Below, in pieces: positions 201 to 45,250 of a stretch of DNA of 48,156 nucleotides. The stretch is from Macrostomum lignano. Taxonomy: Eukaryota. The notes beneath the pieces are model-generated. The model worked only from the letters and a program-made list of their open reading frames with translations. It was not told the origin of the DNA and ran no database searches. Location of the stretch: positions 1 through 48,156 of the forward strand of contig NIVC01004372.1 in the NCBI GenBank assembly GCA_002269645.1, read 5' to 3'. The first letter of the stretch is position 1; each line of letters begins with the position of its first letter. The translations under genes and the position numbers were made by a program.

Positions 201-339
201 AGACCGTATCAAGGTGTTCGATGCTGTAGCAGGTTGTCTGAGACATATTATGTGGTGTCCAAGACTGTCCCGGAGTGTCGAAGACTGCTATGTTGGTTGG
301 TCCGAGATTGTCGCAGGTCTGGCAGTTTCGTGGGTCTGA

Positions 340-985: not shown

Positions 986-1061
986 CGGAGCGTTATAATT
1001 GCATACATGTAGTAACAGACAGCCACGAACTCTTATAAAGTCACATCTCCGCAAATCTTAC

Positions 1062-4561: not shown

Positions 4562-4955
4562 TCACCTGACAATTCCAGTAGGGTACCTGACAATTCCAGT
4601 AGGGTACCTGAGAATTCCAGCAGTTTGTACTTGAGAATTCCAGCAGTGAACCTGAGAATTCCAGTAGTGAACCTGAGAATTCCAGTAGTGAACCTGAGAA
4701 TTCCAGTATAGTGAACCTGAGAATTCCAGTAGTGTACCTGAGAATTCCAGTAGTGTACCTGAGAATTCCAGTAGTGTACCTGAGAATTCCAGTAGTGTAC
4801 CTGAGAATTCCAGTAGTGTACCTGAGAATTCCAGTAGTGTACCTGAGAATTCCAGTAGTGTACCTGAGAATTCCAGTAGTGTACCTGAGAATTCCAGTAG
4901 TGTACCTGAGAATTCCAGTAGTGTACCTGAGAATTCCAGTAGTGTACCTGAGAAA
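4562..4955. repeat. 21-bp minisatellite (CCTGAGAATTCCAGTAGTGTA), ~18 copies
   Basis: Direct tandem repetition; 7-aa periodic ORFs. Confidence 0.95.
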
Positions 4956-7703: not shown

Positions 7704-7814
7704 ATTGGATTCGATAAGTTAGAAAGCCAGACTAGTGCAAGTGGCTTGAGCCCTCGGAGAATGCCTTAGAGAAGTCCGAGTCAGAAACTGCAGAGGTCAA
7801 CAAAGGTCACGGGG

Positions 7815-10740: not shown

Positions 10741-10878
10741 CTGCTACCACTAGAACTGATGCGAGCAGCATGCTAGAACTGATGCTACCACTCCTTACAG
10801 ACATGCGAGCAGTCTCTAGAGACCTTTTCTCATCTCAACCCCGAGCCCCGGTGCCGGTTGCCGGTCATGGCAACTCAC

Positions 10879-10955: not shown

Positions 10956-11057
10956 CTGCCATGTTGAAAATGCAGGGGTTGATTTAAATGTACTTCAAGT
11001 GGTGGGTCCTCTGGCATCAGAAAGCGAGTTAATATCCACACAGGACAAGCGGCTCAC

Positions 11058-13653
11058 CCCAGGCGTGCATGTACAGCAGCACCGCCAGCAGCGCTACAAA
11101 GATCACGAAGACCACAGCGGCCAGGCACAGCAGCAGCAGCAGGTTGCGGTCCGCCTGGGCCCGCTGCGTCCGACCGCCCGCCGCTCCGCCGTCTTCGCCT
11201 CCGTGGGCGTCTTTGCCGTTACTGACGCCACCGGGACCGCTGCCAGCGACACCGGAGCGAGCTGCGTGCGCCGCGTCGACAATGTGCACTAAGGTGTCGT
11301 GGCGGCTCTCCAGCGGCGGCTGGCCGCAGTCCCTGGCCAGCAGGGTCAGCCGAAAGCGCCGACCAACTCCGCGTTTGAACGGCCGAATCAGCGTCAACAT
11401 GCCGTGCGTCCGGTCGATGCTGAAATGCGTACCGCCCCCGTCAGCTTCAATGGGAACGCTGAGCTCCTTCTCCTCAAGGCTGTAGACGATGGTTCCATTG
11501 TCGCCAGCGTCGTCATCGCGTCCTCGCGCCTGCGGCAAAAGCTGTGTGCCGGCCGGGCTGGCGGCGGACAAATTGTGCACCCGGCTGAGCCCCTCAAGTA
11601 TCGGCCAGTTGTCATTGACGTCCAGCAGCGCGATGGTGACCTGGGCGGAAGCGAAAGCGTTCGCGCCGACCGCCTGAACCTCCAGCAGGAGCGTCTCCTG
11701 CCGCTCCCGGTCGAAGTTACCTTGGCCCATCAGCTGGTTGCCCTCGAAGGAAAAGTGGATGTCGGTGGACGACTGGCGGTTGCCGACTTTGTAGCGAATC
11801 TCGGCGTTGGCGCCCGAATCGGCGTCCGTGGCGGTCACGGCGCCGATGAAGCGCCGGCTATAGTTAGCGCCGAAATCTTCGACAATGTGAAAGCTGTACA
11901 CCGGAGGCTGGAACACCGGCGGCGAGTCGTCGACATCCTCGATAACAACCTCAACGGAGGCGGTAGCCGAGAGAGAGTCCGCCCTGCCATCGTTGTCGCT
12001 CACAATCACAGCAAAGTTGTAGCGGCTGCGCTCCTCGCGGTCGAAGGTGACCCGGGCTCGAATCTCTGCTCGGCCACGACCGGTAGACTGGATGCTGAAG
12101 AACTGCCGCCCAGCCGCGTCCAAGTCAAAGCGCAGCGGCGCCGTCGGGTCGTCCGGATCGTCGGCACGGACGTGCCCAACAAAGGCGTCCAGCGGGTTGT
12201 TCTCGGACAGCCGGTAACTGTAGAAGCTCCGCTCCAGGTGTGGTGGATTGTCGTTCACGTCGGTGATCCTGACCGTCAGCTGGTGAGGAGTGATCTTCGG
12301 CGGCGCACCGCGGTCGGTACAGCTAATGTCAACGGTGACCTTCCCGGCTGGTGAGGCCTCCCGATCGAAGGTGACGCCGTTCGGCTTGCGCAGCTCGTAG
12401 ATGGTCATCCGCCGGGCTTGGTCGCCGGCTGGGACACTCGGCAACGGCACGCGTACCAACCGGAATCGATCGGACGGCGTCGCCTGGCATTCCACGGTGC
12501 CGTTGTCGCCAGCGTCAGGATCCGAGGCCATCACCTGGGCCAGCGTCAGCTCTCTACCGTCATTCTCTGTCAAGCTGACGCCGGCGTCGCCGTCGACCCC
12601 GCCGATCTGGATAGTCGGGTAGTTGTCGTTGCAGTCCGTGAGTCGGACCGGCACCTCGATCTCGGATCGCAGCTGGCCGGAGTCCTCGGCCACCACCGGG
12701 ATGAAGAACGACCTCTCTGCCTGGTTCTCGTAGTCCAGCAGTCTGTTCTGGAGCAGGAAGTCGCCGGATATGTAAAACGTGGTGGCGGCTTCTTTACCAG
12801 CGGTGGGCGCGATAGAATAGACGATGCGCTCGTTCAGATCGGGGTCCACTGCTTGCAGTCGCATGAGACAGCGGTGCAGCCGGTCGCACTCCGAGATCGT
12901 CACAGTGGCAGGTGCCTTCGGCCAGCTTGGCGGATTGTCGTTGGCGTCCTGCACAAGCACGCTGATGTCAAGCCGGGCCTTCTCGTCCGGGAATCCAGCG
13001 TCGCTGGCCAGCAGCTGTAGGCTGTAGCGGTCTCGGGTCTCCCTGTCCAGGGGTTTCACCAGCTCCAGCTTCGGGGTCAGCTGCTGCCGGCTGGCCGATT
13101 GAGCAGCCAACCGGAAGTGCGCCGAGGACGCTGCATCGCCAGGCACCAGCTCGTACACAGTGCGACGATGCTCCTTGGCACCGTCCTTGTCCTCCGCCGC
13201 TAGCAGGGAGTACAGCGCCCCAGCCGAAGCCGACTCGCTAATGTTGACAACAAATTTGCCGGTCTTGAACTGCGGCCGATGATCGTTGACGTCTCGCACT
13301 AGGAGATGGACTTGGTAGAATTTTCCTGCACTGACAACAAATTCCAGCTTGCAGCTCTCATGCTGACCGGGACACAGTGTCTCGCGGTCGAGCCTGGCTT
13401 TCGTGGTGATGAGGCCGCCAACTGGGTCCAGTCTGAGCAGCTTTTTCTGCAGTTTGGTCAAGAATGGCGCATTGAACTTCGTGCTTTCGGGCAAGCCGAG
13501 GCGCTGGCTGAGACTGCCGATCCGAGTGCCCGGCGGGACCTCTTCGTCCGTCTGGAACTCGGCGGGCTCAGCATTGGTGAAGGTAGCCGCGGTACAAGCT
13601 GATGTTAAAAGTAGCAGCAACGGCAGCTGCAGCACGAGGAGTTGACAGCGCAT
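11058..13653 (-). CDS. Protocadherin exon 1: signal peptide, 7 cadherin repeats, transmembrane helix
   Basis: Signal peptide MRCQLLVLQLPLLLLLTSACTA; EC1 with EEVPPGT and LDRETLC; repeated DRE/DYE, DxND and AxDxD Ca2+ motifs; TM LLLLCLAAVVFVIFVALLAVLLY; donor TGGG|GTGAG at 11057. ATG 13653 preferred over the ORF-track start 13905. Confidence 0.93.
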
Positions 13654-15107
13654 CCAGCAGAGCAGGGCGGTGGCTGGCTGGGTTCGAGTAGTTGACGCGC
13701 GCGGCTGCTCTGTCAGTTTTTCTGGGATGACAAAGCGCCGCCTCGCTTCAGGGACGCTTTTTGATCCGGCCAGAGGCCGCTCGCCATTGGTTGGCCGGCA
13801 AGGACCAATGGGCTTCAAGGTCTCGGCGCAATTTGAGAGAGAATTAATTGTATTATCATCTTTTAATCTGATTGATAATAAACAGTTTTCTTTAGCCCAG
13901 TTCATGTGCCTCTAAACCTTGACTAATTGTAACATTTATGCCGTTTATGCCATTTATGCAAGAATTAAGAAAAATGATTCCTTAGTTTGCACAACTAGTT
14001 AGACCGCCATTAAATTGCATGGCTGATGTATAAATTGACGAAAGCTGAAGCTCAAGCCGTGTTGACCAAAGCAAGATTTGGTCTCCTCTTTCGATGGCGA
14101 GCGGTCCGCAGTATGCAGCTCTGTTAGCCATCGTTTTGGATTTGAAATTGAGACGTCAATTTATCTTCAAAGAAGACGCCTTGCTGCGTCAACGGATCGA
14201 ATAATCGAATTACTTTGTGATGATGAGCACTGTCGACTTTGACTGCCTCCCCAGAGATGGGATTTTCTATGATTCCACACTTATTGCACTACCGGACCAA
14301 GTTGTCAACTCCCTTTTACAGTTTCCCACCAGCGATTTGTACTACCATACAATGAAATGCATTTGCAGTGCCATTTAGCTCGACCATGAGAGCACTGCAC
14401 CATGAGAGACTGGCACTACATCATCGGCAGAAGACAATAGCTGGAGTCGGTGCTTCGATCCATTAGATTAAATACAGCCGGCAGGCAGACACGATTGAAT
14501 GAAGACACAGGATTAGCTCACCTCTGTCTAGAGCTGAGGAAAAGAGGGAGAGCGATGTAAAGGTGGGGGCCCGCATTGTAAAGCCCCTCCTTCTACTGCC
14601 ATCCTGCCCCCAAGCCTCCTCCCCTGCCCTGGCTTTTTGTATGCCAATAATACGTGTTAAGCCAGGGCCGTCAAAGCGCGCCGCTCAACACCAGCCTCCA
14701 AAACTATAAGCAGCAGCTGCATCTGCTAGGCATTCTTGCACCCCTTCCCCAGCCCACCTCACGCGGCTCTGAGACATGTCAGACTGGTTGGCGCCAATCA
14801 TTTAGCTGCCACACAAGCGCCCAGTCCAGTTGAGCGGCTAATAATCCATGCTGAAATTCTCGCAGAGGGAGAGCAACGCGCGGCATACGTGCTAAGCTCA
14901 CAATGATTATCCCATTGTCATATCTTGTCGATGGTGCCCGATAGACTGTCCTAGTGTCTGATCCGACACTGTTTTAGTCTTGTCGCTGTGTGCGGTCATG
15001 GTGGATGTGGGACTGGTAGTTGCGCATATTCTTAGCGGGTTGGCATGCGATGCATGTAGCCCTGTAGGGGGGGGGGAGCTCAGGAGTTGAAGGGTGGGTC
15101 TATCATT

Positions 15108-15826
15108 GGGCTGTCCACGAGGCTATCTATGGGTTTATCTATGGGGCTGCTATCTATGGGTCTATCTATGGGGCTATCTATGGGGCTATCTATGGGTCTA
15201 TCTATGGGGCTATCTATGGGTCTATCTATGGGTCTATCTATGGGGCTGCTATCCATGGGTCTATCTATGGGGCTATCTATGGGGCTGCTATCCATGGGTC
15301 TATCTATGGGGCTATCTATGGGGCTGCTATCCATGGGGCTATCTATGGGGCTGCTATCCATGGGTCTATCTATGAGTCTATCTATGGGGCTATCTATGGG
15401 GCTATCTATGGGGCTGCTATCTATGGGTCTATCTATGGGGCTATCTATGGGGCTATCTATGGGTCTATCTATGGGGCTGCTATCTATGGGTCTATCTATG
15501 GGTCTATCTATGGGGCTATCTATGGGGCTATCTATGGGGCTGCTATCTATGGGTCTATCTATGGGTCTATCTATGGGGCTATCTATGGGGCCGCTATCTA
15601 TGGGTCTATCTATGGGGCTGCTATCTATGGGGCTATCTATGGGGCTGCTATCTATGGGTCTATCTATGGGTCTATCTATGAGGCTATCTATGGGTCTATC
15701 TATGGGGCTATCTATGGGCCTATCTATGAGGCTATCTATGGGTCTATCTATGGGGCTATCTATGGGAATATCTATGGGTCTATCTATGGGGCTGCTATCT
15801 ATGGGCCTACCTATGGGGCTATCTCT
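15108..15826. repeat. Compound 12/15-bp minisatellite (CTATCTATGGG[G/T] and CTGCTATCTATGGGT)
   Basis: Direct tandem repetition with interspersed 3-bp CTG insertions. Confidence 0.95.
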
Positions 15827-16208
15827 GTGACTACCTATGAGGCTATTGGCGCAGTTCTGGAACTGCTCATCATGTGTTTTTTCTTGTGTTTCAGCATCTA
15901 GGGACAAAGTTGCTGCCATAATTCAATTCAGTCGCAAAGTTGGGTGTTTAAAAAAGCATTGTGGATCCTTGCGCGTGAGATTTGGCTTAACAAACTTTTC
16001 TTTCACTCTCAGGCCACGTCAAATCAATTATTCAGTTGGCCCAGCCATTCCCGACTCCTGGAATAGGGAAATTTGCATTTTTTAAGAAAGAAAATAGAGA
16101 AATTAAGGCTGCACTGCGCTCCAATCAGCCTGTCTTCTAAAAACAACTTTGAGGATAAAGTGAACGTGACTTTGTTTGCCAATTAGCTTTTTGGAATTTT
16201 ATAAATAA

Positions 16209-17142
16209 AATAGAATGGATTGCTAATCTAGCCAACATAATTGATGAAGAATAGAATGGATTGCTAATCTAGCCAACATAATTGATGAAGAATAGAATGG
16301 ATTGCTAATCTAGCCAATATCATTGATGCAGAAATAGAATGGATTGCTAATCTAGCCAACATCATTGATGAAGGAATAGAATGGATTGCTAATCTAGCCA
16401 ATATCATTGATAAAGGAATAGAATGGATTGCTAATCTAGCCAACATCATGAATGCATGAAGGAATAGAATGGATTGCTAATCTAGCCAACATCATGAATG
16501 CATGAAGGAATAGAATGGATTGCTAATCTAGCCAACATCATGGATGAAGGAATAGAATGGATTGCTAATCTAGCCAACATCACCAAGGAATAGATTGGAT
16601 TGCTAATCTAGCCAACATCACCAATGAAGGAACAGAATGGATTGCTAATCTAGCCAACATCACCAATGAAGGAACAGAATGGATTGCTAATCTACCCAAC
16701 ATCATTGATGAAGGAATAGAATGGATTGCTAATCTACCCAACATCATGGATGAAGGAATAGAATGGATTGCTAATCTAGCCAACATCATTGATGAAGAAT
16801 AGAATGGATTGCTAATCTAGCCAACATCATTGATGAAGGAATAGAATGGATTGCTAATCTAGCCAATATCATTGATGAAGAAATAGAATGGATTGCTAAT
16901 CTAGCCAATATCATTGATGAAGAAATAGAATGGATTGCTAATCTAGCCAATATCATTGATGAAGAAAAAGAATGGATTGCTAATCTAGCCAACATCACCA
17001 ATGAAGGAACAGAATGGATTGCTAATCTACCCAACATCACCAATGAAGGAACAGAATGGATTGCTAATCTACCCAACATCATTGATGAAGAAACAGAATG
17101 GATTGCTAATCTAGCCAACATCACGGATGAAGGAACAGCATG
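16209..17142 (+). repeat. 42-bp minisatellite, left arm (GAAGGAATAGAATGGATTGCTAATCTAGCCAACATCATTGAT), ~22 copies
   Basis: Direct tandem repetition; its reverse complement forms the array at 18305-18883. Confidence 0.95.
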
Positions 17143-17612
17143 GCCCGGTGATTCAAGTCATTATTGACAAAGGAATCGTATAGATCACAAAGCATTTGTT
17201 CAGAATAATAATTTTCTTTGCGAAAGAAGCAGAGATCGAGAGCCAGGCCAGGGCCCTCGATGCAGGAGTTGCAAGCCACGAGTTAATGAGCGATGCCTCT
17301 TCTCACCCTCAGAATTAGAAGATGACACGTGCAAAAATAATCTCTCCGCGAAAGTCAAGAGCATCGCGACTAGTACACTAGACTCAGGAGAGTATGCTCC
17401 TGTTCAAAGAAAGATGCGGATGCTGGATGATGAAGCTCTTTAGAGCGGCCCAGGGGTCAGTCTTGCCCGAGCAAACACGGGTCTATAATGGTGAGAATAA
17501 AAAGCAAAATAATTATAATTTTGCCTCTAATAATTATGTAGACTGATTGGCCTGACCTGCCCGAGCAGCCGCAGCATCCAGCAGCGATGGCAGAACTCAA
17601 AGACAGTCAACG

Positions 17613-17904
<292 letters not shown>

Positions 17905-18304
17905 GCACAGTTCCCTAACTTCAAACAGTCTAAAAGTATCGATAGGAAGATGGAAATGGCGGCTTTCTGGTGCAAGGAAGCCGACACAGCTCTACTTATC
18001 TTTTTTGTGACAAACTTTCCTATTTGTTAGTTCTAATTTAATTTGCCCTGTTAAAGCTAGAACAGAGAGAGAGAGAGAGAGAGAGGGAGAGGGGTACAAA
18101 GTAAGCTGCAGGATCTTAAAGGGAATACTCTATAGCACTGTGACATGTCTCACCTTAGCACTTTCCTCGGCAGACCCACTTTTGATTATTCGAGTTTCAG
18201 GAAAGATTCGAACCCTGTGCTATGGCTTCAAACAAAGTCGGAGTTGTTTGAGATTGAGTTGACTACTCAATCGAACAAAATTTTGAAGAGTCCTTTTGAA
18301 GAAT

Positions 18305-18883
18305 GTTCCTTCATGGAATGGGTTGGCAACCCATTCTATTCCTTCATTTATGATGTTGACTAGACTAGCAATTCATTCTATTCCTTCATCAATGATGTTG
18401 GCTAGATTAGCAATCCATTCTATTCCTTCATCAATGATGTTGGCTAGATTAGCAATCCATTCTATTCCTTCATCAATGATGTTGGCTAGATTAGCAATCC
18501 ATTCTATTCCTTCATGCATTCATGATGTTGGCTAGATTAGCAATCCATTCTGTTCCTTCATCCGTGATGTTGGCTAGATTAGCAATCCATTCTGTTCCTT
18601 CATCAATGATGTTGGCTAGATTAGCAATCCATTCTATTTCTAAATCATGTTGGCTAGATTAGCAATCCATTCTATTCCTTCATTGGTGATGTTGGCTAGA
18701 TTAGCAATCCATTCTATTCCTTCATCCATGATGTTGGCTAGATTAGCAATCCATTCTGTTCCTTCATCAATGATGTTGGCTAGATTAGCAATTCATTCTA
18801 TTCCTTCATGCATTCATGATGCTGGCTAGATTAGCAATCCATTCTATTCCTTCATCCATGGTGTTGGCTAGATTAGCAATCCA
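18305..18883 (-). repeat. 42-bp minisatellite, right arm (inverted relative to 16209-17142), ~14 copies
   Basis: GTTGGCTAGATTAGCAATCCATTCTATTCCTTCATCAATGAT is the reverse complement of the left-arm unit. Confidence 0.95.
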
Positions 18884-20134
18884 TTTCATTACTCTGGCTC
18901 ATTATTTCGCACAGAGGGCAGTTCAATCAAGCACCAGATCGGGCCACCTGCCGGGCCGCCACCATTGGGCAGCCCTCCCGGCCCTCAGCCCCTGGGCAGA
19001 CTGTCACGGAGACGCTGGGCTGGACTGCTTCGCAAACGAATCCAGCGGGAAATGAAATTTTTCCCCTCGCTCTCCCATTGCTCTTCTCCCATCCCCAGCC
19101 GGCAGTTCTTGTCCATGCGCCGCGCACGCCCTTTAAGTAGGAAAATTCGGTTTGGTCCAATTTTGTGGAATTCGCGAGGATGGGGCAAGGGGAAACGGAG
19201 CAGATAACTGCGACTGCTGGGCGGATTACAATTAGCCTAAACCGCATTCGGACTGGTGCCGGATTAAGCTCCTCGCGCCCGTTGCGGAGCCCGTTATTCA
19301 GTTAGCACTAGATCTCCCCTCCTCCCCCCCCTGACAACTCGCATCCTCATGCCCCGGGGAGGAGGGAGCTGGGGAGGTGGACATCATTATCTTCCCAATT
19401 GCCCAGCACTGCAGGATGGATGATAATATGAGCTCCTTCAGCTAGTGCAGTCCCAGCTATGCTTCGTCTTTCTCTTTACCAGTGGGCTGAGTATAGGGGG
19501 GCGGCTACACTTCCTGGAGGATCTGGGGGTCTAGCGCCATGGCACTGTATAGTGAATGGGGTACCCCCTGGACTGGGTTGGCACTTGTTCCTACAGTACA
19601 GCCGATAGAGGCGTGGGAGACCGACCGCCAGGTTGAAGAGGGATTTTTTTAATTGCTTTCGTGTGGCTCTTAGCTTTGAGTAGGAGAATTTTTTCGAAGG
19701 CGATGCTACAAAAGTTCGCCTTCGTACAAATTGTATTTTTGCGGTGTCTCCTCTATAATAACTGATTACGAGCTTATAGGGAAAGATTTTCCAGTGCAGC
19801 AATTGAAACTAAACAATAAAAGGACACTAATTTACTGTCGGTTTCAATTGGCGTCAGTTTTTCAGTTTACTTACCTTCTACCAAATGGCTCAAAAATGCA
19901 TGGCCAAAATCCGAATTCTGCTACTCTCAGTAGTCAGGAATTTCTGTGTAATTGATTCAATGACATTCGTGAAGACTTCATTTCTCATGCGACGTTGTTT
20001 CTCTTTTCTATCTATGTGCCAAACTTCCTCTGGATCTGGGGACCCAGGGTCTCAGATTCAATTAAACTTGCTGAAGGCGCGGCTCTCATTTAATCGAAGC
20101 CTTTATTAATAACCAATCACCCGCAAATCACAGG

Positions 20135-24858: not shown

Positions 24859-24949
24859 GATGCCAATGAACGGATGCTAAATCACTGACTACTCAAGTGG
24901 CTAAGTTACTACTTCAAGCGCAAAAAAGTTGCTCCTCCAATGCCCTCAC

Positions 24950-25290
24950 CTGAGTTAAGGGTGCCAAATTTGACACCCTTGGCGTCGTTAGCCAAATCGC
25001 TGACGCTTTCAATTGGCGCGATCAGCCTCTCGATTGTAAGACAGGCAGTCAGGTTAGCGGTGTAATAGGCCATGATGATGAGCGAGAAGGCCCACCAGCA
25101 GGAACCAATTATTCTTGTTGACGCCGACCTGGGCGAGATGTCGATGCCTTGCTGTACAAACGAGGCGAAACTAAACCAGAGACTATTCACTAAACTGAAG
25201 TTTCTTTCCGCTGTCTGCACAGGTTGGTGTCGCAGTAGCGGTCTCTGCGTCGGCTGCGACCTGCCGTAGCGGTCGACCTCCACGGAACAC
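24950..25290 (-). CDS. GRIA: AMPA-type iGluR exon 4 (M2 pore loop, M3, start of S2)
   Basis: [25 protein letters not shown]...[36 protein letters not shown]...KFGTLNSG; acceptor TTAGCAG|G (phase 2), donor TCAG|GTGAG (phase 1). Confidence 0.93.
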
Positions 25291-26014
25291 CTGCTAAATG
25301 CGTCGACGAACGAAATTGAATTAAAAATCCAACTTTTCGCCAAATCTGCTTTCCAGAATGTCACGGTCTCGTTTTAAATGTAACATACGCTCGTACGAGC
25401 GTAAACAAAAATTTCTGAAGAAAGGCGTCTTGCCAACTCCTCGTCTTGTCCTATCCACATGTATTAAACACTTGATGTGATTGGCCACTTCCTTGGTCAA
25501 TGACACTACTTTAGGCGTCTGTTCAGAATTTTACCCATAAATTTGCACAGTCAAGCGAAATCTGCCTTTTTGATTTGGTTCCGAGCTTTCGTTTATGGAA
25601 AAATCGACAGATCTGACGTTTCATTGCAAAATCCGTCAGTAACTAGCATTTAGGAAAGTCGCGACTTTCCTAGTGATTTCTTTAGTTCACCTTCACTTGT
25701 CTCTGTTTACTCTGTTTTCTCTCTCTGTCTAGCTCAATCTTGTTATTCTTATCTCTCTCCCTTGTTGCCTTCTGATTGGCTCTCCATTCTCGCCTCTCTC
25801 TTTAGTCGCGCACTCGACCCCTCCTTTTATTATAAGGGAGTCGACCCCCCTCTAAGTTAGTGTCATATATAACACTGGTTTGGGCCCTGCGCCCACTTAC
25901 TGCTCCTTCTCTTAGTATTCAATTAAATAGTCTCTAGTTTAGTTTTATTTTCTCGACATTCAGATCCATCGGGCCTTAAGAAAGCGTCCAACAGGAATAG
26001 AAACTGACACTCAC

Positions 26015-26330: not shown

Positions 26331-26447
26331 CTGGTGATGGGAGTGTTGATTCAATTTGGATTAGACAAATTAATCAATTTATGCTGTTTATAAGTGGGTC
26401 GTAAATATGTATTTTTTAGTTTTTGAGTTATAGGTGCCTCAGGTATC

Positions 26448-26945
26448 TCCACCCCGACCTGAGGTATCTCCTCTCCGACCTAAGGTATCTTCACACCGAC
26501 CTGAGGTATCTCCACCCAGAACTGAGGTATCTCCACCCAGAACTGAGGTATCTCCTCCCGACCTAAGGTATCTCCTCTCCGACCTGAGGTATCTCTACTA
26601 CGACCTGAGGTATCTCCACTCTGACCTGAGGTATTTCCTCTTCAACCTAAGGTATCTACACTCCGACCTGAGGTATTTCAACCCGACCTGAGGTATCTCA
26701 ACCCCGACCTGAGGTATCTCCACCCAGAACTGAGGTATCTCCACCCAGAACTGAGGTATCTCCTCTCCGACCTAAGGTATCTCTTCCCGACCTAAGGTAT
26801 CTCCTCCCGACCTGAGGTATCTCCTCTCCAACCTAAGGTATCTCCACTCCGACCTGTGGTATCTCCACCCCAACCTGAGGTATTTCAACCCGACCTGAGG
26901 TATCTCAACCCCGACCTGAGGTATCTCATCCTCGACCTAAGGTAG
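26448..26945. repeat. 21-bp degenerate minisatellite (CCGACCTGAGGTATCTCCACC), in iGluR intron 2
   Basis: Core AGGTATCTC every ~21 bp. Confidence 0.9.
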
Positions 26946-28289
26946 CTCTACTCCGACGCGGTAGCAGATATCGAAATGTAGGTAGCAATTCACTTCAAAC
27001 CCCAAGCAGTACCCGAGCATCCAAAATCGTACGTGTGAGTCTTCGATACATTACTGACTGACATGCCATCTGTCACCTCGTTCTTTTGTGGATTGGATAC
27101 CTAGAAGGATTCTGGCTGCAGTAATACCCCTGATAGTAGTTCGTATATTGCAAAAACCGAATGATTCGAGGCTTTCTCGATGGTCTCTCTCCCTGTTTTT
27201 CTTCCCCAGAAATTCTTCTCTTCAACTCAACGCACTCCATCGCCATCTGACGCTGTCATATTGGCTGTCACATGTCGTTGTTGGAGGCGGCCTTTTAAAG
27301 GAGAAAAAAGAAAAAATTTCCAGTCAAACGTCGTCTGCACTTTTCTGTCCACTTATGAAATTGTGCGCTCTCAAGTAGCAATTCGAATATTGCTCGCGGG
27401 GGGGGGGAGGGCGCGGCATTTCCCCAGTCCGTGGACTCCCGGGAAATAGAGCCAGATAGACTGGAAGCAAAACTGGAAATTGCGAGCATTCGAAATATTT
27501 GAAAGGCGTCAAATACAGAGGGATTTTCAGTAGAGGGAAAAAAGATTGTGTAGAGCTCAGCTCTTGAGTGTAACATTGGATAGAAGGGGTACTTCCATGC
27601 CCGATTCTTCCAGTCCGGAATGCTCCGTTTCAGTGGTCCCCGGCCAGTCCCATATGACTTGCCAGGCTTCTTCTGTACGACGTACGTGCGTGGACTCCTC
27701 GTCACAAAATTTGCTTAAGCCAACTCATTCACCCCCAACCTGACCTTGCCTTCCCAGGCCCCATGAGAAATCAGGGAGGGTTTCCACTGCCTGGCGAATT
27801 TACTCCCCTATTCTGAACTGATCCAACAGTTTCCTCCACCCCCAGCATCTCCGTTTGATCATCCCCGCTTTTTGCACCGACCGATTGTAACTCCCAATCG
27901 TATTTCTTGGCTTTGATTGAAAGAAAAACTGTTGACATTTTTCTGATTGGCCTCATCAGCCCAGCTGTCTGAATCTGGGGCCGCTGATTTAACTGCAGTT
28001 ATTACTGTTCCCGATTGAATTTCAAACACCTGAAGCTTCAGATTGAGCAGAAAAGAAATAAAAATTTCATAATGCGTAGAATAGCTTTTTGACAAGTAAC
28101 TGGCCTCGTCAACTTTGCACCCTGACTTCCTGAATTCTCTACTCTCACCTCAGATATCCCTTTACTCCGAACCCAGCAGTCCTAGATATATACGAGAGTA
28201 GAGATCTCTCGTATGCTTACTCCGACCTTAAGTTTCAAAAATATTCCTCTCCTCCATCTTCAGTTATCCTCCGACATAGTGAATCCAGC

Positions 28290-28447: not shown

Positions 28448-28620
28448 TCCTACGACGTATCCCCGCTGTACAACTTCAGTCTTCAGGTGTCTTAAATCTC
28501 AGGTAAGTATTTAGCTATTCCTCAGACTTCAGGTACTCCCACTTTGAATGCAGTTCCAGAGTTCGTACTGTCATTGTGATGATTCCAGATCTCCCAATCA
28601 TAGCGATCTCACCGCCTCAC

Positions 28621-29428
28621 CCATCATTCCGTTCCACTCGAGCTCCCCGCTGCCATCGGGGCTGGGCTCCTGGGCGCCGTACTTTCCGTCCTCAACCAGG
28701 TGCAGCTGCCAGTCGACACCCAGCTTGGCGAAGACCATCTCGGCCAAGTCAATGCAGAATCCGTGATAGCGCTGCCTGAAATCCGAGGCGTTCTCGCTGC
28801 CCTCGCGCAACATGACAAACGGCTCGTTGAGGATGCTGACCACCCGGATCACGGTGCCATTGCCGAGCCTGAGGCTCGCATCTGTTGTGTCGTTTGCGCC
28901 GCTAGCGCCGGACCGCCTTCGGTGCCGGTCGTTGGTGATGTTGAGGCCGCCGGCAGGGGTCCAGACTCCAATTGGTTGGGAGCGGTGCGGCGCGCCCATC
29001 AGGTCCATCACGCGGATGGTATCGGAGCCGCTGCTTGAAAGCCTCGAGGCAACGGCTTGGTGCAGGCGGTGGCGAAGCTCTCGACGTTCAAGACTGTGAC
29101 GTCGCTGGCTGCCGTCGCCCCGGATTTTTCGCCGACCAACTACTAAACCGACGTCGCCTCCGGGGCAGGACAGGTCTGGCCAGGTCAGGACAGTTGTTCT
29201 GCTGACGACATGATCGTCGCTTGTTGCCAAGCCGACCGAATTAGCGGCCTCCGCCAGGGCGGTCAGAGCTGATTGCATCGCCAGAACATCGTGCGACGGC
29301 GGGTTGAGATCCGGCCGGCCGTGGCCGAGAACGGCGGCCGAACGGGATGGAACCGAAACAATAGCCGCTGGGGATCTGAGAGAGTTTGTAGCTGAACTGC
29401 CTGGATTTGCCCCTCGGATTACCGGCTG
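28621..29428 (-). CDS. GRIA: AMPA-type iGluR exon 2 (end of ATD, S1)
   Basis: Acceptor TTCTGTAG|CAG (phase 0); ...VIRVVSILNEPFVM...YHGFCIDLAEMVFAKLG...LVEDGKYGA...WNGMMG|GTGAG (phase 1). Confidence 0.88.
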
Positions 29429-29469: not shown

Positions 29470-29690
29470 AGGAACCACAAAACTGAGAAGCAAACTACGA
29501 GTAAAATGGAAGACCGAGTAAGGACACAACCGAGTAAAGAGACAACGTAGATGCATCTTTACAACGAGTAAAGATGCAACCGAGTAAGACACGACCAAGT
29601 AAAGACACAACAGAGTAAGAACACAACCGAGTACAGACACAAAACAACTGAGTAAAGACACGCAACTGAGTAAATTGACTCCCAAGACAC
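29470..29690. repeat. Degenerate GAGTAAAGACACAAC-type repeat in iGluR intron 1
   Basis: GAGTAA(A) motif recurring about every 15-20 bp. Confidence 0.7.
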
Positions 29691-29723
29691 TACTCCAACC
29701 GTAAGCAAGCTAAAAAGCCGTAC

Positions 29724-30587
29724 CGCCAGATCGAATCCGGTGATATTGCAGCCGCTGTAGATGAAGCTGCCCAGCTGCAGCTCCGACATGCCCAGCGCAG
29801 CAACGGCATAGTGATACTCGGGCCTATTCATGCCTAGCAGGGCCAGCTCTTCCAGCAGCAGCTGCACGCTGTGCATTCCACCAACATCTACAGCCAACAG
29901 TCGACGCCGCGGATGCTGCCGAGTAAGCCTGGCGTCCAGACCGCGCAGCGCCGACCGAGTTCTCTCCAGCTGCGATGGCCCGGCGGCCGGCGCCACCCGT
30001 CGAAAATCGATACTCTCCCCGGCGCTGCCAAATCCGGCGCTGTCGGCCTCGTCCTGTCGCTTCCGACGCCGGAGCGCCTCAGCGAGGCGAACACCCCGAC
30101 GGAAGCCGGCGTCGTCAGCGTAGACGTAGGAGAAATCCGTCCAGTTGAGGTAGGCCAGGAGGCTCTCAAACGCCGGCGCCAATTCGGGTAGCGGGCTGAG
30201 CCTGGTGCCCGGCAAGTCGGGAAAAGCCTGCCGCCAGGCGATGTAGAGCATGTCGTGCGCTCTGGCCCAGCTGGCGATGAGGCGGTCAGCCTCCGGACAT
30301 ACTGAGGCAAACAGGGCCGCGGCACCGGCTCTGGTGGCTGAGCAGAGCCTGGAGAGCAGGCTGTAGCCGCTTTGACTGATGTTAGGCTCCAACGGGACGA
30401 CTTTGACGACTCCGACGCTCGACGCGACGTCGGCAGCGACGCGCCTGAAGACAATCTCGGTGCCTGGCGGAGCCGAGCTGTCGTAGAAGAAGTAGATCGG
30501 AAATCTGGAACCTGCTGGCGCCGCCACTGCTGCTCCTGCTGCTGCGGTGGCGACAGAAACTATCAAGGCAAGGGTCAGCTGTTGCAT
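29724..30587 (-). CDS. GRIA: AMPA-type iGluR exon 1 (signal peptide and amino-terminal domain)
   Basis: Signal MQQLTLALIVSVATAAAGAAVAA; ATD motifs LAYLNWTDFSYVYADDAG and EYHYAVAALG...GCNITGF; donor GCG|GTACGG (phase 0). Confidence 0.82.
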
Positions 30588-31019
30588 CGGGTGAAAAACT
30601 TCTGTTGAAATCTGGGGAACTGGGAACCCCAATGGAGACTATGAGCTCACCAACTGAGGTTGGGACAAAATTTTGAGCATTTTCTTGGTTTAAAGCCAGT
30701 TTCCTGTCGCCTCCGGGCCTCTTTTTGCCTCCCTGATCCCCGAGAGTGTTGCCAGGGCGCTTGAGTCATCCAATAGAACGAGTAAAGGGAGAGATTTTGC
30801 GCCCATTTGGCACGCAATTTTTATCCCTTAAAGGAGAAGTCATTAAAAATTGGGTCTACAGTGTTTCTCAGAGTCTCAGTGCAGTTGCAAAAGCAAGCCG
30901 CCGCTTCCGGACACTCAACTCGGGTTGTAAACCTGACATTCACCGAGCTGATTCGGATTTTTATGTGCTCAAGCAAATGTTTTGAAATGCTGTCCAGCCT
31001 CTCTTAAATCATGTAGTTT

Positions 31020-32003
31020 ACTGTCATCCTCTCCCTGATTCTGTAACTTACTGTCACTGTCTCCCTGATTCTGTAACTTACTGTCACTGTCTCCCTGATT
31101 CCGTAACTTACTGCCACCCTCCCTGATTCTGTAACTTTCTGTCACCGTCTCCCTGATTCTGTAACTTACTGTCACTGTCTCCCTGATTCCGTAACTTACT
31201 GTCACTGTCTCCCTGATTCTGTAACTTACTGTCACTGTCTCCCTGATTCTGTAACTTACTGTCACTGTCTCCCTGATTCTGTAACTTACTGTCACTGTCT
31301 CCCTGATTCTGTAACTTACTGTCACTGTCTCCCTGATTCTGTAACTTACTGTCACTGTCTCCCTGATTCTGTAACTTACTGTCACTGTCTCCCTGATTCC
31401 GTAACTTACTGTCACTGTCTCCCTGATTCTGTAACTTACTGTCACTGTCTCCCTGATTCTGTAACTTACTGTCACTGTCTCCCTGATTCTGTAACTTACT
31501 GTCACTGTCTCCCTGATTCCGTAACTTACTGTCACTGTCTCCCTGATTCTGTAACTGACTGTCACTGTCTCCCTGATTCTGTAACTTACTGCACCTCCCT
31601 GATTCTGTAACTTACTGTCACTGTCTCCCTGATTCTGTAACTTACTGTCACCGTCTCTCCCTGATCCTGTGTTTTCATTCTTACTACTTAACTGTCTCCC
31701 TGATTCTGTAACTTACTGTCACTGTCTCCCTGATTCTGTAACTTACTGTCACTGTCTCCCTGATTCTGTAACTTACTGTCACTGTCTCCCTGATTCGTAA
31801 CTTACTGTCACTGTCTCCCTGATTCTTAACTGACTGTCCCGATTCTGTAACTCCAAAGATTCTGTAACTTACCCTCTTGCAACTTACTGTATCGCAAGTC
31901 TCCCTGATTCTGTAACTTACTGTCACTGTCTCCCTGATTCCGTAACTTACTGCCACCCTCCCTGATTCTGTAACTTACTGTCACTGTGATTCTGTAACTT
32001 ACT
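31020..32003. repeat. 30-bp minisatellite (CTCCCTGATTCTGTAACTTACTGTCACTGT), ~30 copies
   Basis: Direct tandem repetition, degenerating with indels at the right end. Confidence 0.95.
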
Positions 32004-32872: not shown

Positions 32873-32909
32873 GTAAGAATTATTGGGGCTGCTAATCAGC
32901 GGTTGACAT

Positions 32910-33282
32910 TGAAACACCCACCCTACCTTCTCGGTTGGTTATGTCTCTCCTCCCACAGCCATTAAAACACCCACCCTACCTTCTCGGTTGGTTATGTCTC
33001 TCCTCCCACAGCCATTAAAACACCCACCCCACTCTCTCGGTTGGTTTTGCCTCTCCTCTCACAGCCATTAAAACACCCACCCACCCTCTCGGTTGGTTAT
33101 GTCTCTCCTCTCACAGCCATTAAAACACCCACCCCACCCTCTCGGTTGGTTATGTCTCTCCTTCCACAGCCATTAAAACACCCACCCCACTCTCTCGGTT
33201 GGTTATGTCTCTCCTCTCACAGCCATTAAAACACCCACCCCACCCTCTCGGTTGGTTATGTCTCTCCTCCCACAGCCATTAA
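32910..33282. repeat. ~53-bp tandem repeat, ~7 copies, in PanK-like intron 2
   Basis: GCCATTAAAACACCCACCC...TCGGTTGGTTATGTCTCTCCTC(C/T)CACA repeated. Confidence 0.92.
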
Positions 33283-33794
33283 ATCACGGTTGGTTGTACC
33301 TCGGGTCGTTGGCTAGCAGAACTTCATTGAAGGATTTGCTATTCTGGTTGCTATTACTGGCAGTCGAATTGCTGCCCGTCAAATGACGGTATCGAAAAAT
33401 TAGTTGCAAACAATAGGTAAAACTGGGATTCTCAACTAATAAATACAAGCGTAGCTTTAGTAGCCAATCAGGTAATGGGATATCAGTCTTATCAGTCGGT
33501 TCTTGCACGGTTCACCGTCTTTAATTATTAATCCAGGATAAAATTATCCTGGCTTCAACTGAATTCTTAATTTAAATCTTACAGGAACAATTAGATAGTA
33601 ATACTGCTTTCACACAATACTACTGACTAGCAGATGAGTAGCATAGAAGTAGTACGCGGACAATTATTACTTTCAAAAACAAAATAGCAGAACTGGCTTT
33701 CACAACGATAAAAAAATCTTGAAGACCAACTTTTGAAGCGAGAACAGGACGGTGAGATGAAACTGTTTGTGCTCCCCTGTCTGCCTGCTCTCAG

Positions 33795-39329: not shown

Positions 39330-39458
39330 CCTACGCTCGTATTTATCCTCTAGTTATCTGTGGCGTATCTATTTAATTTTTATATTATTTTCCACTTTTT
39401 TAGTACCATATTCGTACCGAAAGGAATGGGGCAAAATCTGTGCCTCAGTGCCTTTATG

Positions 39459-39985
39459 TCTGAGTCGGATGCTTCAGTGCTTGAGTTGGATGCATCAGTG
39501 CCTGAGTCGGATACACTAGTGTCTGATTCGGATGCATCAGTGTCTGATTCGGATGCATCAGTGCCTGAGTCGGATACACTAGTGTCTGATTCGGATGCAT
39601 CAGTGCCTGAGTCGGATACACTAGTGTCTGATTCGGATGCATCAGTGCCTGAGTCGGATACACTAGTGTCTGATTCGGATGCATCAGTGTCTGATTCGGA
39701 TGCATCAGTGCCTGAGTCGGATACACTAGTGTCTGATTCGGATGCATCAGTGCCTGAGTCGGATACACTAGTGTCTGATTCGGATGCATCAGTGCCTGAG
39801 TCGGATACACTAGTGTCTGATTCGGATGCATCAGTGCCTGAGTCGGATACACTAGTGTCTGATTCGGATGCATCAGTGCCTGAGTCGGATACACTAGTGT
39901 CTGATTCGGATGCATCAGTGCCTGAGTCGGATTCACTAGTGTCTGATTCGGATGCATCAGTGCCTGAGTCGGATGCTTGAGTTGG
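39459..39985 (+). repeat. 42-bp (2x21) minisatellite, left arm (GATGCATCAGTGCCTGAGTCGGATACACTAGTGTCTGATTCG)
   Basis: Direct tandem repetition; inverted copy at 40253-40365. Confidence 0.95.
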
Positions 39986-41169: not shown

Positions 41170-41175
41170 TTTATT
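41170..41175 (-). terminator. Putative poly(A) signal AATAAA of the prepropeptide gene
   Basis: AATAAA on the minus strand about 85 nt after the stop codon at 41260. Confidence 0.45.
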
Positions 41176-41259
41176 TTTTGTCATCAGTAGATGTTGTTGT
41201 TGTTGCTTCATGCTAAATTAACGCTGAATTTGCTGAATTTGCTGGCAGATGTTGCTGAA

Positions 41260-41655
41260 TTAACGCCTCTGCCAGAGCCAGTGCCAGCGCCGGGGCGGGT
41301 CCGGCGAGCGGCCAGATCGCTCGTGCTTGAGGGCAAACTTCAGATAGTTGAACAGTGGAATGTAGGAGCGCTTCTTCACCAGTTCGTCTCCGGCCTCGAC
41401 GTCGGAGTCTGCGGGATATTCAACCGGGTTGGAGTTCATTAATAAGCTGCTTACTGGCTGCATTAATGAACTGATAGCGTGAGAAAGTGGATTCAGCTTA
41501 CCTTTGTTGGCAGGATGCTTCAAGTCTGTCTCGTCGGGGTCTTCAACGGGGCTTCTGCCGCGGCAAGGATGGGCCGAAGCGGCATAGACAGCAGCAGCGA
41601 CAGTCAGGAATAGCAGCAGAAGCTGCGCAATGCTCAGTTTTTGCTTGGCTGCCAT
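41260..41655 (-). CDS. Secreted prepropeptide (neuropeptide or antimicrobial peptide precursor candidate); probable 48-bp in-frame intron at 41454-41501
   Basis: Signal peptide MAAKQKLSIAQLLLLFLTVAAAVYAASA; acidic spacer; KKR site; C-terminus SYIPLFNYLKFALKHERSGRSPDPPRRWHWLWQRR*; donor AAAG|GTAAG. Confidence 0.72.
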   Translation of the reverse strand: MAAKQKLSIAQLLLLFLTVAAAVYAASAHPCRGRSPVEDPDETDLKHPANKGKLNPLSHAISSLMQPVSSLLMNSNPVEYPADSDVEAGDELVKKRSYIPLFNYLKFALKHERSGRSPDPPRRWHWLWQRR

Positions 41656-41730
41656 GCTCTTCTTCTGTTTTCCAAATTGTTTCTGCAGTCAGCTCTGGTT
41701 GCGGTCCTGACTCTGCCGCTCGGAGCCGGC

Positions 41731-41737
41731 TTTTATA
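41731..41737 (-). promoter_or_regulatory. TATA box (TATAAAA) of the prepropeptide gene
   Basis: Canonical TATAAAA in a GC-rich context, ~76 nt upstream of the ATG, with an A-rich short leader. Confidence 0.6.
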
Positions 41738-42183
41738 GACTCGACAGCCAGACAGGCTTGGCACCAGCTGGCGCTAAATTGCTTAATTAGTAGGGGGGTG
41801 GGAAGCACGAGGATGGAGAAGAGTGCCAAATTTTCCAGCTGCAATCATTTTGCTAATTTGCTCTCGATGAAGCTCAATTATGGACAAAATTGGCTTACAG
41901 GCGGCAATTCTCTTGCTGCAGATGCAGAAAATACGGCGATTGAGAATCAACAAAATCAGAGAAACGTTTCCCTGCTGCTCAATTGTGCCACCGAGGCTGG
42001 CCGACTCGAAAAACTGTCCGATTAAGTAGACCAAACTTCTATCTCTGTTTTGATGTTTGCTGTTGTTGTTTGTTGTTTGCAATCTACACTGCAGAGTACT
42101 ATTTTGACTCATATTTTATATTTTATATTTTATATATTTTGACTCACACTCAAGCTTGTAAGACTGTTGATTTAATTTTAAGA

Positions 42184-42832
42184 CAGGGGTCGGCAAACTT
42201 TTTCACCTCAGAGACCAGATAGAGAATCTACGAGCTAGATCATTGCTGCGGGCCGGAGAGGAAGAGGGAATAGGAGAGAAGAGGAGAGAGGATATAAGAG
42301 ATAAGAAGAGATGAGAGCGAAAATAAAAAGAGATAAAAGAGGAGAGGAGAGGAAAGAGATGAGAGGCCAGAGGAAAGGATAGGATGGAGAGGAGAGGAGA
42401 GAAAAGAGAGGAGAGAGATAAGAGAAGAGAAGAGAGGGATGAGATGAGAGAGGAGAGAGAGGAGAGGAGAGAGGACAGGAGAGAGGAGAGGAGAGAGGAG
42501 AGGTGGGAGGCGAGATGAAAAATGCGATGAGAGAAGAGATGAGAGAGGAGAGGAGAGAGGAGAGGAGAGAGGAAAGAAGAGATGAGAGGAGAGATGAAGG
42601 GTGGGAGGAGAGGTGAAAAATGCGATGAGAGAGAAGATAAGAGAGGAGAGGAGATAAGAGAGGAGATGAGATAAGAGAGGAGAGAGGAGAGGAGAGATGA
42701 AGGGAGAGGAAAAGTGAGAAGAGAAGACACAAACCCTGAGCGGGCCGGATTGCTATTGTGAAATTTCAAAGGACCCGAGGGCCGGATAGATAATCTTTGC
42801 GGGCCGCATGTGACCCTCAGGCCGGAGTTTGC
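42184..42832 (+). mobile_element. hAT (Charlie/MER58-like TIR) non-autonomous MITE with expanded AG-rich interior
   Basis: Starts CAGGGGTCGGCAAAC; ends CAGGCCGGAGTTTGC (truncated TIR); TTAAGA flanks both sides; homologous to 28290-28447. Confidence 0.72.
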
Positions 42833-42944: not shown

Positions 42945-43503
42945 AGGGGTGCCCACCAAGGAGATTGGGGCGCCAACCAAGGAGATTGGGGCGCCAACCA
43001 AGGAGATTGGGGCGCCAACCAAGGAGATTAGGGCGCCAATCTAGGAGATTGGGGCGCCAACCAAGGAGATTGGGGCGCCAACCAAGGAGATTGGGGCGCC
43101 AACCAAGGAGACTGGGGCGCCAACCAAGGAGATTGGGGCGCCAACCAAGGAGATTGGGGCGCCAACCAAGGAGATTGGGGCGCCAACCAAGGAGACTGGG
43201 GCGCCAACCAAGGAGATTGGGGCGCCAACCAAGGAGATTGGGGCGCCAACCAAGGAGATTGGGGCGCCAACCAAGGAGACTGGGGCGCCAACCAAGGAGA
43301 TTGGGGCGCCAACCAAGGAGATTGGGGCGCCAACCAAGGAGATTGGGGCGCCAACCAAGGAGATTGGGGCGCCAACCAAGGAGATTGGGGCGCCAACCAA
43401 GGAGATTGGGGCGCCAACCAAGGAGATTGGGGCGCCAACCAAGGAGATTGGGGCGCCAACCAAGGAGATTGGGGCGCCAACCAAGGAGATTAGGGCGCCA
43501 ATC
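42945..43503. repeat. 21-bp minisatellite (CCAACCAAGGAGATTGGGGCG), ~27 copies
   Basis: Direct tandem repetition; 7-aa periodic ORFs. Confidence 0.97.
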
Positions 43504-44209
43504 AAGATGAGTCACTGCTACCCTAAACGAACCACTTGATTGACTGACATCAATGTGGTCGGTCTAGTATGCCCGAGAAGTAAAGCAACGTTAGAACTCG
43601 CCCAGTCTTGCATGCAATACTCGTAAGTGTTTTTCATCTATTTTTCTTTCGGTTCGGCAGAATTTTGGGCACTTAGAGACTGCAGCAGCTGTTCAAGTCT
43701 GGAATCGGCTATTCATTTTTCTTTAACATAAAACTGAAAAAGCTTTTTTGTTTTTCTGCCTTTCGACAGCTGCAGCGAGTTTGCTCGTCAGAAAAACAAT
43801 TTTCTGAGCGACGTATTGAAAGAATTCCGACAAATTGGGGAAATTGCTTGCCAAGTAGGCACCAGTTTACTGCGCGCCTTTGAGCTGGCTTCTGTCCCAC
43901 CGTGTCTAGCAGAAAAGCATTTTTCTCTGGAGATAAACCGCTCCACCTCAGCAAATCGTTGCGGCACCCAAGCTCAAGCGGCTATTTTTGTCCTGCTCGA
44001 AAAACTTATTCTTCCCCGAGGCTGCTTCGTCACATTTGGATTGGTTAATCGGTTGCTTTCCTCCGCTTCTCCTAGAAAATTCTAATATTTTTCGTCCCAA
44101 CTGATTGCCAGACAATTAAATCTTAATGCATGCGGATGTCCAAGGACTACTTGCAGTGTAATTTGAAGAGTTTTTTTCAATTATTCAAGGCCCAGTGTCT
44201 GCGTGTCCG

Positions 44210-45250
44210 TCTTAGTGTCTGCCTGTTTTACTGTCTTAGTGTCTGTCTGTCTTACTGTCTTAGTGTCTGTCTGTCTTACTGTCTTAGTGTCTGCCTGTCT
44301 TACTGTCTTAGTGTCTGTCTGTCTTACTGTCTTGGTGTCTGCCTGTCTTACTGTCTTAGTGTCTGTCTGTCTTACTGTCTTAGTGTCTGTCTGTCTTACT
44401 GTCTTAGTGTCTGTCTGTCTTACTGTCTTGGTGTCTGTCTGTCTTACTGTCTTAGTGTCTGTCTGTCTTACTGTCTTGGTGTCTGCCTGTCTTACTGTCT
44501 TAGTGTCTGTCTGTCTTACTGTCTTAGTGTCTGTCTGTCTTACTGTCTTAGTGTCTGTCTGTCTTACTGTCTTAGTGTCTGTCTGTCTTACTGTCTTAGT
44601 GTCTGCCTGTCTTACTGTCTTAGTGTCTGTCTGTCTTACTGTCTTAGTGTCTGCCTGTCTTACTGTCTTAGTGTCTGTCTGTCTTACTGTCTTAGTGTCT
44701 GTCTGTCTTACTGTCTTAGTGTCTGTCTGTCTTACTGTCTTGGTGTCTGCCTGTCTTACTGTCTTAGTGTCTGTCTGTCTTACTGTCTTAGTGTCTGTCT
44801 GTCTTACTGTCTTAGTGTCTGTCTGTCTTACTGTCTTAGTGTCTGTCTGTCTTACTGTCTTAGTGTCTGTCTGTCTTACTGTCTTAGTGTCTGTCTGTCT
44901 TACTGTCTTAGTGTCTGTCTATCTTACTGTCTTAGTTTCTGTCTGTCTTACTGTCTTAGTGTCTGCCTGTCTTACTGTCTTAGTGTCTGTCTGTCTTACT
45001 GTCTTAGTGTCTGTCTGTCTTACTGTCTTAGTGTCTGTCTGTCTTACTGTCTTAGTGTCTGTCTGTCTTACTGTCTTAGTGTCTGTCTGTCTTACTGTCT
45101 TAGTGTCTGCCTGTCTTACTGTCTTAGTGTCTGTCTGTCTTACTGTCTTAGTGTCTGTCTGTCTGTCTGTCTGTCTGTCTTACTGTCTTAGTTTCTGTCT
45201 GTCTTACTGTCTGACTGTTTGTCTGTCTGTCTGTCTGTCTTATTAGTGTC
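44210..45250. repeat. 24-bp minisatellite (GTCTGTCTGTCTTACTGTCTTAGT), ~42 copies, ending in (GTCT)n
   Basis: Direct tandem repetition; 8-aa periodic ORFs. Confidence 0.97.

Follow-up and report, generated by a model that had tools for sequence, protein, structure and literature searches.

A compact two-exon gene of the flatworm Macrostomum lignano predicted to encode a secretory prepropeptide with a Trp/Arg-rich C-terminal tail

The DNA analyzed here is a 48,156-nt stretch of the Macrostomum lignano genome (contig NIVC01004372.1 of assembly GCA_002269645.1, positions 1 to 48,156 of the forward strand; hereafter the window), and on its minus strand it carries a complete small two-exon gene with a spliced product of 100 amino acids. 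The sequence shows a genuine gene, compact and TATA-driven, that encodes a secretory prepropeptide, and very probably the locus is functional as a gene whose product is secreted and processed as a peptide precursor. Judged by the searches described below, the product belongs to no known family; the gene is public only as an unnamed fragment, and the full prepropeptide appears to be undescribed. As to function, we tentatively favor the possibility that a charge-balanced prepropeptide is cut at a tribasic KKR site to give a cationic Trp/Arg-rich, membrane-active peptide, perhaps of host defense, and three other explanations are weighed against it.

The elements of a complete transcription unit follow one another along the minus strand (Table 1). 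Measured from the T that opens the TATA box, the A of the initiator (Inr)-like motif, at 41708, sits 29 nt further 3′, a canonical spacing, and a 5′ untranslated region (UTR) counted from this putative start would be about 53 nt long. The start codon at 41655 is in a good context, with A at −3 and G at +4, and the leader holds an in-frame TGA 36 nt 5′ of it. The initial annotation of this interval had listed TATAAAA, a leader, an ATG, a signal peptide, an acidic spacer, KKR, the segment SYIPLFNYLKFALKHE, RR-WHWLWQ-RR, a stop, and AATAAA without stating the strand; all of these are present on the minus strand, and the part of the acidic spacer that it had left as a gap corresponds to the 93-nt intron, which is removed in the spliced product. 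Just past the in-frame leader TGA, 35–40 nt upstream of the ATG, a CTGCAG (41697–41702, minus strand) could serve as a (trans-)splice acceptor. In related Macrostomum species, about 20% of genes undergo spliced-leader (SL) trans-splicing (PMC10468722).

To judge how often such a combination arises, all 78 ATG-initiated open reading frames (ORFs) of at least 60 codons in the six frames of the whole window were compared. A signal-like N-terminus was found in the peptide gene alone (1 of 78), a TATAAA 40–150 nt 5′ of the ATG in two, and an AATAAA 20–200 nt 3′ of the stop in four, so that the peptide gene is the only one of the 78 to combine the three, and about 0.001 such ORFs would be expected if the three were independent. 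Codon usage was scored as a log-ratio in bits per codon with a table built from the Pfam-supported cadherin and ionotropic glutamate receptor (iGluR) exons of the window. In the proposed frame, exon 1 scored +0.215 and exon 2 +0.221, the best of the six frames, and the intron scored −0.38; GC content fell from 0.59 for the exons to 0.44 for the intron, and the 3′ flank had 0.35. That TATA box, Inr spacing, Kozak context, signal peptide, intron contrast, codon bias, and poly(A) signal should all coincide by chance is very unlikely.

The 93-nt intron is canonical, in frame, and stop-free, and this is why a mechanical ORF list gives an ORF of 131 amino acids here instead of the spliced product. 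If the intron were retained, the protein would have 131 residues, with 31 extra residues in the pro-region; by our own estimate, the chance of a stop-free stretch of 31 codons is about 22%. The intron-retaining form was rejected as the main product on account of its non-coding codon statistics, its lower GC content, and a public gene model in which the intron is spliced out. This model, the uncharacterized M. lignano protein A0A1I8HCB4 of 74 amino acids, is the sole database match of the product; it is 100% identical over residues 1–74 and has the identical splice junction, between PANK and DSDV. It agrees with the flatworm origin suggested by the initial annotation. On the question, also raised there, of whether the gene is transcribed, the model gives a partial answer: being independent, it supports the splice junction, and it ends (…FNYL) without the final 26 residues, which comprise KFALKHE, the RSGR site, SPDPP, and the Trp/Arg tail, so that it is silent on the latter. 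The cut-off could stem from a contig end or an assembly error in an older assembly.

Table 1. Features of the peptide gene and its product, with positions in the window
Feature	Position	Strand	Remarks
TATA box TATAAAA	41731–41737	−	Read directly
Inr-like TCAG	41707–41710	−	A at 41708, putative transcription start
Coding exon 1, 154 nt	41502–41655	−	Met1 to first base of codon 52; signal peptide and start of acidic pro-region
Signal peptide, residues 1–28	41572–41655	−	n-region MAAKQK, h-region LLLLFLTVAAAV, c-region A-S-A followed by HP
Intron, 93 nt, GTAAGC…CCGCAG, phase 1	41409–41501	−	Interrupts pro-region
Coding exon 2, 149 nt including stop TAA (41262–41260)	41260–41408	−	
KKR, residues 63–65	41368–41376	−	AAG AAG CGC read directly; KK and KR by known-motif rules
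C-terminal 35-residue peptide SYIPLFNYLKFALKHERSGRSPDPPRRWHWLWQRR	41263–41367	−	Net +6, 8 Lys/Arg, 3 Trp
RSGR, residues 82–85	41308–41319	−	R-x-x-R site, Gly at P2; motif rule
WHWLWQ, flanked on both sides by RR	41269–41286	−	Hexanucleotide repeat TGGCAC TGGCTC TGGCAG
9-nt tandem repeat GCTGAATTT (plus-strand letters), ×2.4	41223–41244	−	In 3′ UTR
Poly(A) signal AATAAA	41171–41176	−	Read directly; 84 nt past the stop codon

The spliced product consists of a putative signal peptide MAAKQKLSIAQLLLLFLTVAAAVYAASA, a pro-piece HPCRGRSPVEDPDETDLKHPANKDSDVEAGDELV, the KKR site, and the C-terminal peptide listed in Table 1. The signal peptide has a basic n-region, a hydrophobic core with a Kyte-Doolittle nine-residue mean of up to 3.0, and small residues at −3 and −1 (A-S-A at residues 26–28, then H-P), and by the (−3,−1) rule cleavage is predicted after Ala28. 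AlphaFold2 (AF2), run without an alignment, placed a helix at residues 9–28 with a predicted local distance difference test score (pLDDT) of about 91, within a model of low overall confidence (mean pLDDT 62.7, predicted template modeling score 0.25). Removal of the signal peptide would leave a pro-form of 72 residues, in which a 34-residue pro-piece with 10 Asp/Glu (net −6) precedes the cationic part; the segregation of charge had a shuffle P of 0.023 at the KKR split and of 0.033 for the best split anywhere. Past the signal helix, AF2 gave, at low confidence, a helix at residues 70–81 (LFNYLKFALKHE), a weak helix at 92–98, and coil for the remainder. Because the mature protein has a single Cys (Cys31), matches no Pfam family even at E ≤ 10, and is mostly coil in the AF2 model, it is better regarded as a peptide precursor than as a folded domain.

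Known-motif rules place convertase-type motifs at KKR65, RSGR85, PPRR92, and the C-terminal RR, in keeping with the compact secretory prepropeptide with convertase-type sites that the initial annotation had proposed. KKR is the predicted main prohormone-convertase site, and RSGR is a possible cleavage and amidation site that may yield SYIPLFNYLKFALKHERS-NH2. The 12-residue tail PPRRWHWLWQRR contains three Trp and four Arg (net +4), and three Trp within five residues had a shuffle P of 0.007. The precursor has no repeated peptide copies; its sole internal repeat is H-x3-G-R-S-P, at residues 29–36 (HPCRGRSP, 41548–41571, minus strand) and 80–87 (HERSGRSP, 41302–41325, minus strand), with different Arg, Ser, and Pro codons at the two sites. 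In a post hoc test, a repeated 4-mer occurred in 3% of shuffles and in 0.2% with the His included. With Gly-Arg before Ser-Pro in both copies, the repeat may represent a common processing or recognition motif, or may be due to chance.

The −6/+6 charge partition at the tribasic site, the tail of RRW-x-W type, the absence of amidation signals and repeated peptides, and the orphan status of the gene are our reasons for preferring a membrane-active defense peptide, and orphan status fits fast-evolving effector genes. In such a pathway, the 28-residue signal peptide would be removed after A-S-A on entry into the endoplasmic reticulum, and the 72-residue pro-form would travel through the secretory pathway charge-balanced, its anionic pro-piece (−6) neutralizing the cationic part (+6). 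A subtilisin-like convertase would then cut after KKR65, and a carboxypeptidase could trim the C-terminal RR, releasing a cationic effector of 33–35 residues, unstructured or short-helical, with SYIPLFNYLKFALKHERSGRSPDPPRRWHWLWQ(RR) as the candidate form. Its RR-WHWLW-QRR end might insert, through Arg and Trp, into the interface of anionic membranes, and the effector could thus be a host-defense secretion (antimicrobial or anti-predator) of an epidermal or gland cell. Processing machinery is at hand in M. lignano, which has an essential PC2 homologue (PMC4490696).

Searches for relatives returned the gene's own fragment and nothing else. The full 100-residue and 131-residue forms had no entry in an exact look-up in a collection of 15 billion proteins; beyond A0A1I8HCB4, nothing was found by a word-indexed homology search of 5.8 billion protein clusters or by an exhaustive phmmer (HMMER) search of 1.84 billion representatives. 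hmmscan of the 100-, 72-, and 131-residue forms against Pfam-A gave no family at E ≤ 0.01 or at E ≤ 10, and a PDB sequence search with the 35-residue C-terminal peptide gave chance-level matches only (E = 0.47 and 7), in a search that left out chains shorter than 20 residues, so that tritrpticin and indolicidin could not appear. A scan of metagenome contigs produced 306 pattern matches, none of them confirmed, and within the window, tblastn and blastn with the gene as query detected no paralogue and no repeat copy. Literature searches with the peptide strings and the accession gave no match, the predicted products resemble no described peptide, and nothing on the gene was found in the M. lignano literature on antimicrobial peptides (AMPs) or neuropeptides. 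The family had also gone unrecognized in the initial annotation, and these results leave it so.

Several observations weigh against a membrane-active defense peptide. The W-x-W-x-W tail is encoded by a threefold hexanucleotide repeat (TGGCNS ×3), for which replication slippage accounts cheaply, so that the tail is possibly young in evolution; the Trp motif could be a recent slippage product and not a selected feature. Since A0A1I8HCB4 stops at residue 74, the tail is without independent support and is documented by the window alone. The collections searched contained no orthologue to show conservation of KKR or the tail, and other Macrostomum genomes and transcriptomes, which do exist (PMC10468722), are apparently not represented there. 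A description of a Trp-rich AMP from flatworms was not found in the literature searched, and the processing sites are defined by simple motif rules. The amphipathic character that the initial annotation had given to the segment SYIPLFNYLKFALKHE is not borne out: its helical hydrophobic moment of 0.23 is equaled or exceeded by 44% of shuffles. The AF2 helix at 70–81 has a moment of 0.39 (shuffle P = 0.20), and both values fall well short of the magainin, melittin, and LL-37 yardsticks. In addition, acidic spacers and dibasic sites are just as typical of neuropeptide precursors.

That last point leads to the possibility that the gene encodes a neuropeptide, peptide-hormone, or pheromone precursor, which PC2 of neurosecretory cells would process at KKR65, RSGR85, and PPRR92 into SYIPLFNYLKFALKHERS-NH2 (with Gly84 as amide donor), SPDPP, and WHWLWQ, and these products would act on G-protein-coupled receptors. 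By motif rules, the precursor has the signal peptide and the mono-/dibasic sites flanking peptides by which neuropeptide precursors are recognized, and with its acidic spacer, three internal convertase motifs, and a C-terminal RR for trimming it fits this role; M. lignano also has a neuronal, essential PC2 homologue, RNA815_2403.2 (PMC4490696). The differing codons of the two H-x3-GRSP copies hint at selection at the peptide level rather than DNA duplication. The Gly at P2 of RSGR likewise speaks for it as the one possible amidation signal; Gly-basic pairs occur at RSG-R (and CRG-R) only. On the other side, Gly is absent at the C-terminus and ahead of both KKR and PPRR. The missing peptide copies, the unfamiliar predicted products with their empty string searches, and a net charge of +6 on a Trp/Arg-rich peptide, which is unusual for the class, also count against it, as does the lack of similarity to flatworm or other proteins in UniRef-containing databases, although phmmer detects short neuropeptides poorly and the absent matches are thus weak counter-evidence. 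We regard a neuropeptide-type precursor as unlikely.

The orphan status of this small, signal-peptide-bearing, TATA-driven gene could also be expected of a lineage-specific gland secretion outside defense, for example, a prostate seminal-fluid peptide or a constituent of adhesive, rhabdite, or mucus material, which would be secreted intact or cut at KKR and act on the mating partner or within the secreted material. Among the 76 prostate-limited transcripts of M. lignano, 31 had no BLAST hit, and a signal peptide was present in 38 of the 65 with a predicted ORF (PMC5977470); reproduction-related genes are reported to be fast-evolving in the genus (PMC7336406, PMC8662610). The repeat-derived tail and the lone unpaired Cys, which might form a disulfide dimer, would suit a secreted protein under rapid evolution. 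On the other hand, no evidence connects the gene with any organ, and a gland secretion of this sort leaves the marked charge partition around the tribasic site unexplained. The sequence strings of the gene are also absent from three text supplements of the seminal-fluid screen (PMC5977470), but these are small files (26.9 kb) with few sequences and their silence is weak evidence. On balance, a gland product of this kind seems rather unlikely.

A more skeptical explanation is that the ORF is young or non-functional, having arisen de novo in a satellite-rich intergenic region, maybe transcribed with its protein unselected, or that it is an artefact of gene modeling. In its favor are the location between minisatellite arrays, the hexanucleotide repeat under the tail and the 9-nt repeat in the 3′ UTR, the absence of a homologue in the databases searched and of a paralogue in the window, and the fact that the public model is only a fragment. 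The codon score of 0.22 is also below that of the cadherin and iGluR exons (0.34–0.48). Nevertheless, promoter, Kozak context, signal peptide, intron, codon bias, and poly(A) signal occur together, with about 0.001 such combinations expected per window, and the GRSP repeat in differing codons suggests constraint at the protein level; we therefore hold a young or spurious ORF to be improbable. A narrower version of the defense reading, namely a taxon-restricted, possibly de novo-born macrostomid host-defense gene whose Trp/Arg motif came from (TGGCNS)n slippage at the 3′ end of the ORF, strikes us as quite improbable as well; if true, it would represent the first Trp-rich cationic AMP described in Platyhelminthes, with an AMP "warhead" derived from a microsatellite.

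The surroundings of the gene are rich in repeats. Minisatellite arrays with units of 12–60 nt crowd the window (334–990, 2890–3512, 4564–4954, 6820–7710, 8429–10741, 15095–15846, 26437–26957, 31018–31987, 32907–33287, 39460–39974, 42274–42727, 42946–43506, and 44209–45236) and flank the peptide gene; examples are an 18-nt unit repeated 128 times with 99% matches (8429–10741) and a 24-nt unit repeated 43 times (44209–45236). Many long mechanical ORFs, some of them open in three frames together, are such arrays read through, and the same holds for the weak Pfam matches to LbR_Ice_bind (39360–39980) and ETX_MTX2 (30969–31565). An inverted pair of satellites, with the same 42-nt unit repeated 22 and 13 times in opposite orientations, lies around a (GCTG)×73 microsatellite (16209–17143, 17614–17906, and 18326–18885). 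A cadherin exon at 11029–13905 on the minus strand has 958 open codons, at least five cadherin repeats (PF00028, E = 3.5e-57), and the top codon-bias score in the window. Exons of an iGluR gene (24909–25364, 28598–29278, and 29559–30632, minus strand) contain ANF_receptor, Lig_chan-Glu_bd, and Lig_chan domains, and the start of this gene lies some 10 kb 3′ of the peptide gene, with which it shares the strand. The idea that exon 1 belongs to the iGluR gene as a signal-peptide exon lying far upstream was set aside, since exon 2 with a stop and a poly(A) signal follows and the public model joins exons 1 and 2. Rfam and tRNA scans of the whole window returned nothing.

A taxon-restricted secretory prepropeptide is a familiar kind of gene, and since small secreted orphan genes are common in the M. 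lignano genome, as such orphans are in flatworm genomes generally, the finding is unsurprising in itself and contradicts no expectation. Should the peptide be both produced and active, flatworm innate immunity or chemical ecology, a field with very few characterized peptides, would gain a new effector, and a natural template that is short and rich in Trp and Arg would become available; should it instead serve as a neuropeptide or in seminal fluid, the gain would be one lineage-specific signaling molecule. Transgenesis and RNA interference in M. lignano permit direct tests, and the gene would become more interesting if its Trp/Arg tail, born from a microsatellite, turned out to be an antimicrobial motif that is conserved and active. 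For annotation, the public entry A0A1I8HCB4 misses the entire putative active region.

Compared with known systems, the tail RRWHWLWQRR resembles the Trp/Arg-rich AMPs (tritrpticin, indolicidin, and the lactoferricin B core RRWQWR), which form a functional class and not a homologous family, in its alternating Trp flanked by Arg pairs. Measured against tritrpticin and indolicidin as yardsticks, its Trp fraction and net charge are in their range and its helical amphipathicity is likewise low, and with a high Trp fraction, flanking Arg/Lys, and short length PPRRWHWLWQRR has the sequence features of a candidate Trp-rich cationic AMP. The difference is that no sequence homology exists and that the motif here ends a 35-residue peptide with a hydrophobic helix and an SPDPP hinge. 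Tritrpticin and indolicidin come from cathelicidin precursors with a cathelin domain, which the peptide gene does not have. The cathelicidin-type layout suggested by the initial annotation thus holds for the order of the parts only (signal peptide, anionic pro-region, and cationic C-terminal peptide); membership was rejected, as there is no cathelin domain (PF00666) and the pro-piece has 34 residues and one Cys, whereas the cathelicidin pro-domain has about 100 residues and four Cys in two disulfides. Cathelicidins are, moreover, vertebrate proteins released by elastase or proteinase 3 and not at a KKR convertase site.

With PC2-processed flatworm prohormones, such as those of the planarian npp/spp genes, the product shares the small secretory precursor, dibasic and R-x-x-R sites, and acidic spacers, and it differs from them in having no repeated copies, one doubtful amidation signal, and no similarity to annotated flatworm proteins. 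The putative seminal fluid proteins of M. lignano (Mlig-pro1-76) are marked by prostate-limited expression in in situ hybridization together with a secretion signal, and of the two a predicted secretion signal is seen in the product. Amphibian skin-peptide precursors (preprodermaseptin) and Hydra arminin-type precursors consist of a signal peptide, a short acidic spacer, a Lys/Arg site, and one cationic C-terminal peptide, and they are taxon-restricted and fast-evolving. Although the peptide gene belongs to an unrelated lineage, matches neither their conserved signal nor their spacer regions in exhaustive searches, and has a mature part that is not a classical amphipathic helix, these precursors appear to be its closest architectural analogue.

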